From contig NW_027437464.1 in NCBI RefSeq assembly GCF_964204645.1, forward strand, positions 1 through 64,000: DNA of 64,000 nt. The letters run 5' to 3'. Of this stretch, positions 3,933-61,035 are shown in pieces. The notes beneath the pieces were generated by a model, which did not search any database, was not told the origin of the DNA, and worked only from the letters and a program-made list of their open reading frames with translations. How positions within the stretch are numbered: position 1 is the first letter of the stretch; each line of letters opens with the position of its first letter. Source of the stretch: Tubulanus polymorphus (Eukaryota; Animalia; Nemertea). A program made the position numbers and the translations under genes.

Positions 3933-3984
3933 TATATATATATATATATATATATATATATATATATATATATATATATATATA
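3933..3984. repeat. (TA)26 microsatellite, left boundary of giant unit copy 1
   Basis: Pure TA run read directly. Confidence 0.98.
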
Positions 3985-5504
3985 CTTAAAAACGCCCACT
4001 TAACGGGACTTACATATGAGACCTGCAAATCGGGCCCTAGTAGAAGGGCATGTTTTTGAGCTACCAATGAAAGTCAAATCGGTATAAAACCACCTGAAGA
4101 GACGATGTATCACTTCAGTTAGTCGATGTATTGCTTTCCCTTTATGAAAATGACTTTTCCTTTCAGACCGATTTTTTGGGCCTGTCCCCGTAATCCCTTT
4201 GGGTCTTTAACCCTTTCACACCTAAAATTTTTTATTAAAAAAAAAATATTAAATTTCCGTTAAATCATCATCAAGCTAACCATAACACCCCCGGCAGCTA
4301 TCGAAATGAACAGATTACATATTCTATTGCAGTTTACAAAATTACTCGGCCAATTTAAAAGGAAAGATGGTATCATTATCTTAGCCTTAGAGATCCTTAG
4401 ACCAACGAAATGATTAATGATGAACTAGTTAATTTTGGGCTTGGGTAATCTAAATAAAATGCCGCTGACACATAATGCAAGATTGCTGAGAATTCACAAA
4501 TTGTTAGTAGAGGCTAAATTTGTCACGTAAGAAAATCATATCGTGACGTTGGCATACAATGGTGCGCGCCGATTGGCCGTTCCGTCACGCAAATGCTTTA
4601 AAGGTGCGGCCGGAACTGCATCCGAAAATCTGCATCCCAATTGTATCTCATTTTGGAGTTGTGTCATGCAGATATATGTAGCCTATATACTTTAGTGTTA
4701 CCCCTTTATCCTGATGCTGTTTCATTGTTTGAGGCCATATTTTATACGGAAATATTATTTTGCAATTAAATGGAGTGATAATTATTTAGATCGTAACTTT
4801 TCTGCTTTCTTTTTCTTCTATTTCGTTTTTCATTGGTCATCGTTCGTATCAAAGCTTGCTCAATTCGAATCGGTCTATCCCAGCTTGAAGCCAAAATAGA
4901 TGCTGGTTCAGACGGATTAATTTATTTTTTCACCCATTTTAAGAAAATTTGACTATATCGAACGTGCAGGTACCTGGATCCAGGAAATCTCTATTTTTGT
5001 GACGGTACCGAATTGGCTGCAACGTGATTCCATTGCAGTTTTGATTCATTCATCGCTGATTTTGTAATACAGTCTGGAACAATTCTAGAGGCCAAATGCT
5101 CACGGTACTAACAGTGCTCACAGTTGATACTTTTTACTGATTCAAGGGGACCACAGACTTGTCAGTTTAAAACCAGTAACCATGGGTAGTGTATAAACAT
5201 ATGATTAAACATTATTTTTTCCAACAAATTTACAAAATTTTACTGTGTGCAATGGAGAAATGCAACAATTATTGTGAGTACATTATTGCCTTTCATTTTT
5301 CGTTAAATTTTAACATCTGGATAAGTGCAAAAAGTGCAAATATTGAAGTAATGCTCTCTATGATTTGTTGATAGGATCATGTATCCGTAGTCGCGATAGC
5401 TTTAAATTAGATGAAAGTGGCAGAAATCCCTTAAAATAAGTGCAATATCATCAATATCAATATAATATCGATATCATCGAGCCAGATTCATCTTACGAAA
5501 ATGG

Positions 5505-5790
5505 TACACGTGTAATTGTAAATGAAAATACACGTGTAAAATTGGCCCAATTTTACACGTGTACTTTATCCAAATTACACGTGTACTTCATCCTAATTAC
5601 ACGTGTACTTCATCCAAATTACACGTGTACTTCATCCTAACTACACGTGTACTTCATCCTAATTACACGTGTACTTCATCCAAATTAAACGTGTACTTCA
5701 TCCTAACTACACGTGTAGTTCATCCTTATTACACGTGTATTTCATCCAATATTACACGTGTCTTACACGTGTACTTCATGCTAAACACAT
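5505..5790. repeat. 22-bp subterminal tandem repeat (tacacgtgtacttcatccaaat) of the EnSpm element
   Basis: About 12 units containing the palindrome TACACGTGTA. Mirror array at about 10645-10790. Copy 2 has one unit fewer. Confidence 0.9.
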
Positions 5791-6169
5791 GTGTCTTTGA
5801 TTGCCATTTTTTGTTGAATTCAAATCAAACCACCATGTGAGGAAATCTCCTTAATCTATGTGCTGTTTAGAATGAACACTCAAGAGATTCACATTTTCCA
5901 TACTAACTGATTTATTCATCTTCATAAATTTTATAAATTTTTGAGTAATTGCATGTCTTATGTTGGCCTCTTTTGCACCCTTCTCCTTTCGACATTGTTC
6001 TGAAATGATAACCATTTGAAAAAAATTAAGCAAAAGTATACAATGATTTCTTTACGAGGATAAATAAATCAACTTCAGCTGCTTGGGATGATGATTAAAT
6101 TATATAGCTTTTTCTAACAGTCTTCTGCATATAACAGCTTTTCACTCTTAATGACTTGATTTTAAGCCA

Positions 6170-7033
6170 TATGGTGAAATGCTTGACAATCTGGAAATTT
6201 CAATGTTCAACGCCACCTGATGAAAAACAAGGGGTCTAGGGACACCATGCCCGTACGGTTACGAATGCTAAACAATCAACATAATGAAATAGAAACAGGA
6301 CATTGAAACTCACCACAATCATAGAACATGTCACAAGCTACAATTTTACAATTGATCGATGTTATAATGTATTCATAGGTACCAAAATAAATTAGACAAA
6401 TTGTATATAATTCAATACTCAACTCCCCCTGGTGGTGAGAACAAAAACCTGGGTAACCCCAATTCCACATGAGGTGAATACTACAACAGTGGTAACAATT
6501 ATCACATATCAAGACTATAAGTCAAAACCTGTCGATATTTTCCTTCAAAAACCTTCTTTTATCTACGAATGAGAACTGATGACACCAAGATGGCTGCCAA
6601 ATGTGTCATGCTTGACTGATCGAAAAATCTGTCTCGTATGTTTTAGATTGTTAAGAAATGTATACCCATCTCAAATTTCAAAGAAAAATTGCAAACCATT
6701 AGGCAGCTACAAGGCAAAAATGACCTTTTTGGGTACAAAAAAGGTCACATGATGGCCATCTTGTGTCAAGATGGCCATCTTCATCTTCAAAATCTCCTTT
6801 GAAAACTTCAAAAAATTGCATAAGTGATGATTTTGGGGAACGAAAATGGCCAATGCAGTTGGCCATCTTGATTCGGACCAGTTTTGGGCTGAAGACATGT
6901 CTAGGATAGATATGTGTGTAACTTAAATATCAAGAGTATTAAAACTTCCCAAAATACTGGATTCCATCTACAGACGAACAAAGGGTGAATGCAATAGCCC
7001 GCTTGCTTGGACTTACGTCTCAAATGGGCTAAA
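6170..7033 (-). mobile_element. Diverged Helentron-associated (HINE/Pearl-like) copy inside the EnSpm element
   Basis: Same modules as the large array: gaaactcaccacaatcatagaacatgtc, aagatggc, and a terminal tagcccg...gggcta hairpin. Boundaries approximate. Confidence 0.6.
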
Positions 7034-59547: not shown

Positions 59548-60498
59548 GTTCCAAGTGGGCTAAAAAGATATGGAATAACTAAACTGATTTACCATCGGTT
59601 GCGGCAAGCTGACTCATAGGCCTATCTGTCATAAGACTCTCCATGTGGTTCAACTGCGGATTGATTGGAATCTTCCACACGACTTGTAGGCTTATCGAAT
59701 TACTTTATAGGCCTAAAGCAATTGTGTAGTAGCTAAAATATATACATGATCAGGGATGAAAACGGCCCATACTGAAAAAGTTGGAAAATAGGCCTAATGG
59801 AAAAAAAATTTTTTGGGAAACAAAAATCAGTAACTTTTAGCCAAAAATCTTACTTTCTTTTGGTCAAAATGTCAATAGTTTGGGCTTGAATTACAGCCGC
59901 TCTTTGAATGAGATGCCATATTGGTTTCTCCGACTCCACAGTTGTGCTAACTACTGCCAAAAGCCGGCTTAGGGAGCACTCCTAACTACGGAGCACTCCG
60001 ATGTGAATCCTTAGTTATGCCATCCAATATAAGCCTAAAAGTTCCACCATAGACCTAGGCCTATCTCTTCACAATCACACCCCCAAGATAAATTGGCTGT
60101 GACTGTGTTGGACTACCGGTGCCGACCTGATTACACCTGCGGTAGGCCTAAAAGCCTGAATTAAAATATCATGCCAAACGAACGAAATCAAGAGTAAAAG
60201 TCGCCCCAAATATGTCCGGTTTGTTTAGGCCTACTACGGTCCATGGGTGTATTGTTTGGCAACTGTTCAGTGACATAGAATTGGCCTACTGAATTGAATT
60301 ATTCAAAGAACATTCAATGAATCTATTGTTAACGTTAGGCTAGTTAACGATAGCCTAACCTGTCAGTGGTTTAGTTTCACGATCGGATATTTTCACAAAC
60401 CACACGTTGATATAAGCCCATCCGATTATAAAAAGCTTACCACCGACGATTAGGTAACTAACTCAGTTGATACGAGCAAAAAGATTTCATTTATCAAT

Positions 60499-60694
60499 AG
60501 TACTTACCCAACAAGCCGTGCATAAACGCTAAACATAATTCCGAATCGAAACGACGATAATGGCCGCCACGTTGATGTGATCCTTGAATCTGATTGGTCG
60601 AGTCATACGAATCAATCTGATTGGTCGATAGATATATATCAAATCTGATTGGTCGAATCATACATAACGTTTCCGGAGTTCACCACCAGAGGGG
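60499..60694 (-). promoter_or_regulatory. CCAAT-triplet promoter-like region (copy 2)
   Basis: Duplicate of 30790-30985. Confidence 0.55.
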
Positions 60695-60903
60695 TGTTGT
60701 GTCGCTACTCAACGACCCAATATGCGTTTCTGCCACATACGATATAATAATGTATGGGTGCTAACCACATCAGCTAAATAATTGGGGCCAAAATTATTGG
60801 GTCCTAGTCCCAATAGATAGAAAATGACCCAATACGACAGAGAGGCCCCAATACTCCGAGTCTCAGAATCACGCATGTCCCGATAAGTTGGCGTTTATAA
60901 AAC

Positions 60904-61035
60904 TATATATATATATATATATATATATATATATATATATATATATATATATATATATATATATATATATATATATATATATATATATATATATATATAT
61001 ATATATATATATATATATATATATATATATATATA
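60904..61035. repeat. (TA)66 microsatellite, right boundary
   Basis: Pure TA run. Confidence 0.98.

Follow-up and report, generated by a model that had tools for sequence, protein, structure and literature searches.

Gene-less tandem units bounded by TA microsatellites in the nemertean Tubulanus polymorphus are probably derivatives of a (TA)n-specific Crypton-like DNA transposon

Cryptons, reportedly treated by Goodwin in 2003, are to our knowledge the least understood of the eukaryotic DNA transposons: it is difficult to delimit their ends, the site of recombination is not known, and circles have not been demonstrated. Microsatellite-targeting members are already on record, with microsatellite-specific insertion being described for some families of CryptonV (PMC8869645, citing Kapitonov and Jurka 2012, Repbase Reports 12:2034). 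A circle model has been proposed for the movement of Cryptons, and the typical sites of such recombinases have been described (Kojima and Jurka 2011, PMC3212892). In the nimaviruses, telomere-type repeats are the target of tyrosine-recombinase lineages, and (AT/TA)n is that of one lineage (PMC10871703). Here we describe a 64,000-nucleotide stretch of DNA from the palaeonemertean Tubulanus polymorphus (assembly GCF_964204645.1, contig NW_027437464.1, positions 1 to 64,000; hereafter the window), in which there are probably two copies, arranged head to tail, of a (TA)n-specific Crypton-like DNA transposon in a non-autonomous form derived by deletion. The window starts an unplaced contig of 81 kb, C47, of a 268-Mb assembly; C-numbers are contig labels throughout. 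An earlier reading of the same letters, here called the original prediction, had proposed a giant microsatellite-associated mobile element.

The window contains three perfect TA tracts, placed by Tandem Repeats Finder: (AT)26.5 on the left (3932-3984), (TA)29 in the center (31195-31252) and (TA)66 on the right (60904-61035). Between the first two lies unit 1, a non-autonomous copy of 27,210 bp without a recombinase gene (3985-31194, plus strand, delimited by end-to-end alignment), and between the last two lies unit 2, a second non-autonomous copy of 29,651 bp (31253-60903, plus strand, delimited by alignment to unit 1). The two units are colinear from end to end, with 99.5% identity in the first 13.6 kb and 97-99.6% beyond, and their lengths differ because 2.1-2.4-kb internal repeats and the units of a 63-bp minisatellite are present in different numbers. 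Both start with CTTAAAAACGCCCACTTAACGGGAC and end with GTCCCGATAAGTTGGCGTTTATAAAAC, and both abut the TA tracts directly. The unit ends form imperfect inverted arms of 24 nt, 21 of which match. In unit 1, the 5′ arm TTAAAAACGCCCACTTAACGGGAC occupies 3986-4009 on the plus strand and the 3′ arm, whose reverse complement is TTATAAACGCCAACTTATCGGGAC, occupies 31168-31191 on the minus strand; the corresponding arms of unit 2 are at 31254-31277 (5′) and 60877-60900 (3′). This arm match score is equalled by one in 5000 random 60-mers taken from the unit, and the outermost 1-3 bases are not the same at the 5′ and 3′ ends. The predicted (TA)-unit-(TA)-unit-(TA) layout, with base-exact ends and imperfect inverted arms, is thus borne out by both Tandem Repeats Finder and alignment.

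At the central junction (31168-31277) the 3′ arm of unit 1, the (TA)29 tract and the 5′ arm of unit 2 follow one another, such that inverted arms surround a TA spacer. A 3′ arm followed in this way by a 5′ arm is found at this sole place in the assembly. By analogy, this layout would be the one expected for the joint of an excised circle (attP-like), here located in a chromosome.

Searches of the genome reveal that the units belong to a dispersed family. The first and the last 400 bp of the unit each recur at about 12 genomic places, on eight contigs and with 93-100% identity. A search with the 20-nt arm pattern recovered 11 5′ arms and 12 3′ arms on eight contigs, all with 0 mismatches (the pattern read backwards, used as a control, gave 1 match). 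In 22 of these 23 cases, the homology breaks off at one and the same base, beyond which comes a TA run of 7-205 bp, and the flanks beyond the TA runs, inspected for all 23 ends, are unrelated to one another. Because the ends are dispersed, base-exact and TA-abutting, with unrelated outer flanks, they identify a mobile family and no plain segmental duplication, in agreement with the original prediction. Pairing the ends gives copies of 9.4 kb (C6), 21.8 and 27.5 kb (C12), 25.6 kb (C9) and 30 kb (C5); across the family, sizes run from 9.4 kb up to about 57 kb. In other parts of the assembly there are several orphan ends, both 5′ and 3′. Illumina depth at the ends in another sample, set against a single-copy expectation from depth and run size, gives an estimate of about 15 copies.

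The family is mobile and recently active, and its gene-less form has spread very recently. The 9.4-kb copy on C6 equals the unit with an internal deletion, at 99.99-100% identity, and the 3′ 1.9 kb is identical at three loci, namely unit 1, a copy on C13 and the copy on C6. Twelve copies retain, intact, a 3.25-kb stretch of the interior that contains a nested high-copy repeat. The family therefore spread after it had gained its internal repeats, which upholds the further proposal that the element was mobilized as a whole after gaining them. We note that two 3′ ends on C2 (C2:13990152 and C2:12788405) lie in opposite orientation 1.2 Mb apart, with the same 13-bp TA run, the same outer flank and 4 differing sites in 1.9 kb; this pair is an inverted segmental duplication taking in an element end. 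An arm match on C8 with 2 mismatches, at a place with no TA tract, was rejected as chance.

The left outer flank of the dimer reveals what preceded the insertion. Positions 3000-3931 (plus strand) belong to a repeat family, here called X, with six other copies at 93-97% identity, and the left (AT)26.5 tract is the internal microsatellite of this repeat. In alignment, the six paralogues read ...GTACATTTGAC, then (TA)5 to about (TA)100, then GAATGATTTAAAG..., with the TA tract at the exact junction point. Paralogues with the TA tract and without the element indicate that the microsatellite pre-exists and that the element sits in it. Three X copies, the one in the window included, are without a 22-bp stretch just before the microsatellite. 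The right outer flank is unique in the genome, does not continue family X, and carries, at 61193-61423 on the minus strand, the remains of a tnp2-type (CACTA/KDZ-like) transposase (PF02992, E 3.5e-4, under the curated cut-off). We therefore find that the family inserts specifically into (TA)n microsatellites. The microsatellite-specific insertion by which CryptonV families are described is seen here in the 22 of 23 ends, in the X paralogues, and in a relative on C7 that is TA-bounded on both sides.

The window units contain no recombinase gene by tblastn with the spliced recombinase protein, database entry P0053, and only a decayed SANT-like relic was found. The gene resides in the two oldest copies of the family, C4:16905360-16941327 and a copy ending at C12:9996849, which are 93-94% identical to the unit. 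Both hold an extra 21-22 kb within the block of 2.1-kb repeats, bounded by internal repeats and not by TA. On its minus strand, this segment contains 17-aa repeats in a long array, two motifs resembling zinc fingers and three exons, which read ...RLILFNERRRAEVKDLKL..., ...GKSRKN...STSLRKYIATVSQ and ...LARHLGHDVKTHIEYYRL and include the motifs RLILFNERRRAEV, GKSRKN, STSLRKY and HLGH...YYR. P0053, matched by database search, is the NCBI spliced model ‘uncharacterized protein LOC141913847 [Tubulanus polymorphus]’, located on a contig whose 11,548,486 bp equal the length of C12; it splices together exactly these three exons and continues into a final one that is SANT-like. This recombinase lineage has only two genomic copies, both within copies of the family, and the one on C4 is frameshifted. 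The presence of a spliced recombinase gene in older copies, and of a related family with the same gene and the same TA-bounded plan, supports the earlier guess of a tyrosine-recombinase, Crypton-type element. The description of an unusually large non-autonomous element of that kind is supported as well: the units are without the recombinase, and the gene is carried by older family members on C4 and C12.

Other content of the recombinase segments was also inspected. Besides the recombinase gene and its repeat-rich N-terminus, the segment has no open reading frame (ORF) of more than 170 aa, and a reverse transcriptase (RT) domain is absent from the Pfam matches of the large ORFs, in a scan that was not exhaustive for small or split exons. 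The 900-1660-aa ORFs of the C4 and C12 copies were set aside as mostly open frames over coding repeats of about 51 bp, and their DAHP_synth match as spurious. Two further ORFs on C12, of 1088 and 818 aa, were rejected as family genes, being part of a nested MuDR element and having no similarity to the window. Loci positive for PF00589 were likewise considered as a source and rejected: a genome scan gave 41 matches, 0 of them within family copies, and the three loci that were inspected, all lacking a microsatellite, proved to be DIRS-like retroelements with several long ORFs.

We note several features of these segments and of the genome in their own right. On the minus strand before the recombinase gene, thousands of codons of cysteine-containing 17-aa repeats (CQLPAVTACKDSRMVES...) remain open for up to 1,662 codons; the array runs on the minus strand from L060:3863 to L061:2811 in the C12 copy and over L057:2529-7514 in the C4 copy. 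The nested MuDR-type element (C12:9983410-9995422) measures 12,013 bp, has 44-bp terminal inverted repeats (TIRs) and a 9-bp duplication (AGACTACAG), and its two ORFs show Ulp1-like, GATA, SWIM and PHD features; its last 393 bp occurs at about 30 other places in the manner of a miniature inverted-repeat transposable element. DIRS-like retroelements are numerous in this genome and have three or four long ORFs, the last being a PF00589-positive recombinase.

A second family repeats the same plan with a related gene. A recombinase 30% identical to P0053 has several genomic copies and a first exon of 744 aa, in which an OTU protease domain is recognized; the other ORFs have no Pfam match. The copy on C7 (C7:12043969-12067887, recombinase on the minus strand) measures 23,919 bp from start to end. 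On its left, an imperfect TA tract of about 220 bp is followed by CTGAAAACATACTATTAACGGGGTTTG..., and its right end is ...CGCCCCGTTAATCGTACATTATCTTAG against (TA)25. The minus-strand recombinase gene, 4.4 kb further in from the left, shares its exon layout and its SANT tail with P0053. The whole thus reads (TA)n, CTGAAAACATACTATTAACGGGG, minus-strand recombinase, CCCCGTTAATCG..., (TA)25. Both ends of this family recur at five loci on five contigs with 100% identity and the same start and stop bases, giving copies of 23.5-24.6 kb, one of 24,559 bp. In the ~24-kb relative, the recombinase is the only ORF of more than 160 aa, and no RT-sized ORF was found; each element holds an OTU, zinc-finger, tyrosine-recombinase, SANT gene. 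From its sequence, the family looks like a currently active autonomous relative. When the four arms of the two families are aligned, TTA.CGGG is invariant and lies 14-17 bp from the TA tract, within the common core TTAACGGG. TA flanks, related arms and this recombinase therefore occur together in two families.

The catalytic domain of P0053 very likely has the tyrosine-recombinase fold, judging from structure prediction. An AlphaFold model of residues 1-190, built with the alignment of homologues, has a mean predicted local distance difference test (pLDDT) score of 75.5. When this model was compared with 48,161 representative PDB chains, the first 14 places were all taken by tyrosine recombinases, including archaeal Xer, Tn1549 integrase, XerH, XerA, XerD, an integron integrase, lambda integrase and Cre, with 107-137 residues aligned to the catalytic domains at Z-scores of 4.0-5.5, which are modest and under the tool's caution line of 8. 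Type IB topoisomerases come next, followed by QRICH1 and Ndc10 at Z 2.0, and no unrelated fold competes. Foldseek also ranks XerH and XerA as top matches, at a level that is not significant. Across 29 homologues, residues R11, K60, H162 and Y171 vary not at all or hardly at all. At an E cut-off of 0.001, the wider recombinase family comprises 2,536 cluster representatives; it carries no Pfam annotation.

The inverted arms raise the alternative that the family is a cut-and-paste TIR transposon whose DDE transposase prefers TA-rich targets, the recombinase gene being cargo or a resolution enzyme; such an element could resemble Ginger2/TDD, with TATA being duplicated, or Tc1/mariner, with TA being duplicated. 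Within a TA tract, a short duplication of this type would go unseen, Ginger2 elements favor TATA (PMC3845634), and Ginger2-like integrases are reported to put endogenous nimaviruses of 265-285 kb with 46-bp TIRs into (AT/TA)n (PMC10871703). We nevertheless consider this alternative highly unlikely. No DDE-type gene was found in the 64-kb window or in stretches of 28.7 kb on C4, 47.7 kb on C12 and 36 kb on C7, excepting the nested MuDR, which has its own 44-bp TIRs and 9-bp duplication. Furthermore, the termini are CTTAAAA... and ...TAAAAC, with no TGT start as in Ginger TIRs, the outermost 1-3 bases differ between the ends, and two independent families pair TA flanks and similar arms with a tyrosine recombinase. 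The Ginger2/TDD hallmarks of an integrase-like DDE gene and TGT termini are accordingly absent from the copies examined. For Tc1/mariner, TA at both junctions is compatible, but no transposase gene was found and the terminal bases differ. Helitrons and Helentrons insert between A and T, or between T and T; their ends (5′-TC ... CTRR-3′) occur on neither strand of the element.

The mechanism we propose for the Crypton-like element is modeled on the Crypton circle model (PMC3212892). The recombinase would bind the two arms and excise the element as a circle whose joint consists of 3′ arm, (TA)n and 5′ arm, and strand exchange would then take place within the TA core with any genomic (TA)n. Exchange within a TA core leaves TA on both sides and no recognizable target duplication. 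The gene-less form would have arisen by loss of the recombinase segment between its flanking 2.1-kb repeats, and gene-less units would have moved in trans, most likely by means of the recombinase of the C12 copy. The long TA spacers may have grown by slippage after insertion.

A number of observations weigh against the Crypton-like interpretation. On the side of the protein, the fold scores are modest, as stated, and the tyrosine-recombinase call rests on the fold search and the conserved motifs because sequence-profile searches gave no match: Pfam and PDB searches of P0053 were blank, as were a PDB search with a profile of the 29 homologues and an hhalign comparison with the DIRS-type recombinases of this genome, and PF00589 was touched by only 2 of the 29 homologues, at E 0.003. 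Two homologue-bearing contigs from other organisms show no TA tract within 10 kb, a distance that is uninformative given the element sizes. On the side of the element, the C4 copy is frameshifted and without its first 181 bp, and for the recombinase-bearing C12 copy no 5′ arm was found, so that either copy may be incomplete. The arm spacers measure at least 58 bp, compared with 6-8 bp in known recombinase sites, and the family has 24-nt arms although Cryptons are defined as being without TIRs. No circle, empty site or excision was observed. Finally, Illumina reads and Logan contigs stop at the TA tracts, and the contig of the window is an unplaced one of 81 kb.

These last two points also bear on whether the dimer is an assembly artefact, in which two copies belonging to separate loci would have been fused at a TA tract, the family itself still being mobile. 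The small, unplaced contig and the reads and contigs that stop at the TA tract would fit such a join, as would the outer flanks, since the X repeat on the left and the tnp2 relic on the right do not rejoin; the orphan ends elsewhere suggest, moreover, that the assembly breaks at elements of this family. Several features speak the other way. The 27 mismatches between the units in 13.6 kb, along with structural differences, exclude a copy that was collapsed or doubled, 58 bp is a short TA tract for a mis-join by a long-read assembler, and same-orientation neighbors that exist on C4 (21.6 kb apart) and C12 (124 kb apart) make a biological origin plausible. We therefore regard an artefact as unlikely.

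Comparison of the units with other copies also bears on how a genuine dimer arose. Over the 3′ 1.9 kb, unit 2 differs from unit 1 at 2 sites, and the 3.25-kb stretch gives the same picture. Given that unit 1 is identical here to the C13 and C6 copies but not to unit 2, the dimer is no fresh local duplication. A tandem duplication by unequal exchange between flanking TA tracts, with no recombinase in that step, would have flank-(TA)-unit-(TA)-unit-(TA)-flank as its expected product and would agree with units that are 99.5% alike in their first 13.6 kb. However, the identity of unit 1 with the C13 and C6 copies, against 2 differences from unit 2, would require the duplication to predate the C13 and C6 transpositions, and outer flanks from different sequences would be left unexplained. 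Such a duplication thus appears quite improbable as the source of the dimer.

For the Crypton-like element we envisage three routes to the dimer: (a) insertion of a second copy into a TA tract that borders a resident one, (b) recombination of the right junction of one copy with the left junction of a same-orientation neighbor, deleting the intervening DNA, or (c) unequal exchange between TA tracts. Only route (b), junction recombination with deletion, explains the non-matching outer flanks. More tentatively, the wider clade of recombinases could drive transposons whose attachment site consists of two arms of roughly 24 nt around a TA-repeat core, with any (TA)n as a landing pad, cargo of at least 57 kb tolerated and resident copies recombining, right junction with left junction, into dimers, an extension that we hold to be possible yet somewhat doubtful. 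If it is true, host DNA between recombining copies would be deleted, and the family would cause losses from chromosomes in addition to insertions.

The units themselves appear devoid of genes. They contain no ORF of more than 177 aa, their longest ORFs sit in tandem repeats, and a Pfam scan of the ORFs was blank. They hold several nested or high-copy repeats common to dispersed copies of the family. A block of 2.1-2.4-kb internal repeats with 154-bp tandem repeats extends over 15004-27022 (unit 2 equivalent, 42266-56668); its copy number varies between the units and between family copies, and it is inside this block that the recombinase segment of the older copies sits. The SANT/Myb-like exon relic is decayed and frameshifted and is found at 14131-14254 on the minus strand and again at 41399-41516 in unit 2. 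It resembles the last exon of the recombinase, matching residues 273-321 of P0053 by tblastn at 48-60% identity in two frames.

Near each 3′ end, three copies of the CCAAT-like TCTGATTGGTCGA (a CCAAT box on the minus strand) occur at 30880-30947 and 60589-60656, annotated on the plus strand, about 250-315 bp inside the end, where chance predicts 1.7 matches per whole window. Reading inward on the minus strand, these TCTGATTGGTCGA CCAAT boxes are followed by ATG...GGTAAGT, and from its sequence the region looks like a putative promoter. Between the internal repeats and the 3′ end lies a GC-rich 63-bp minisatellite of about 25 units (27826-29415; unit 2 equivalent, 57472-59125). The minisatellite has a GC content of 52-54%, two of its minus-strand frames are open, and it is retained in the 9.4-kb deletion copy.

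Further observations concern smaller repeats. Positions 30647-30754, a stretch of about 108 bp in the 3′ region, are a very high-copy short repeat, with Illumina depth about 15x that of the rest of the element and many loose ends at the borders. Arrays of CACGTG palindromes, with 22-bp and 32-bp repeats at 5553-5761 and 10647-10764, adjoin an inverted pair (5492-5517/10775-10800) and are maybe part of a nested element; no clear target duplication was found for this inverted pair.

In sum, the family offers base-exact ends at two dozen junctions, arm motifs common to two families and a defined (TA)n target, and copies that are 100% identical at different loci, together with a junction resembling a circle joint, make the mechanism directly testable. 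Elements of 10-57 kb are carried into microsatellites, and TA-flanked ‘segmental duplications’ may be such elements, a point of interest to genome annotation. The system may also matter for large-cargo integration tools. Judged by its sequences, the clade of recombinases with a zinc finger and a SANT tail, sometimes with an OTU protease, appears to be widespread in marine invertebrates and without database annotation.

Among described systems, endogenous crustacean nimaviruses are likewise giant integrated elements that target simple repeats; those in (AT/TA)n differ in having a Ginger2-like DDE integrase, 46-bp TIRs and viral genomes of 265-285 kb (PMC10871703), and no viral gene was seen in the window family. 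The loxP and FRT sites of Cre, Flp and Xer resemble the central junction at 31168-31277 in placing inverted arms around a central crossover. In known sites of this type, however, arms of 11-13 bp lie directly against a spacer of 6-8 bp (PMC3212892), whereas the window spacer is a TA tract of at least 58 bp and the conserved arm core is 14-17 bp away. DIRS, Ngaro and PAT elements, of which this genome has many, also encode a tyrosine recombinase. They carry gag and RT/RNase H ORFs beside it and match PF00589, whereas an RT-sized ORF is absent from the window family, the recombinase of which has diverged too far to match PF00589; in the segments scanned, the absence of RT and RNase H that separates Cryptons from DIRS and Ngaro applies here too.

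The closest counterparts are the Cryptons. Those of fungi, oomycetes and animals (PMC3212892) have the tyrosine recombinase as sole mobility enzyme, with no reverse transcriptase, as here; the recombinase is missing from the window units and, by fold and motifs, is predicted in the older copies. Accessory cysteine-protease domains occur in both, C48 in Cryptons (PMC3212892) and OTU in the ~24-kb relative. CryptonV, as described in PMC8869645, is likewise a lineage of tyrosine-recombinase DNA transposons with microsatellite-specific families, and the microsatellite association put forward in the original prediction is confirmed there. By that description, CryptonV comes from cnidarians and the present family is nemertean, and the present family differs in its size of 9-57 kb, its 24-nt inverted arms and its amplified gene-less derivatives. 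Classical Cryptons have no TIRs and no long direct repeats, their terminal repeats being 4-6 bp (PMC3212892). The window family has direct (TA)n repeats at both ends, these being whole TA microsatellites, yet 24-nt imperfect inverted arms too, and it is several times larger. From the published Crypton definition it departs in the inverted arms, the whole-microsatellite terminal repeats, the size of 9-57 kb and the amplified non-autonomous derivatives.

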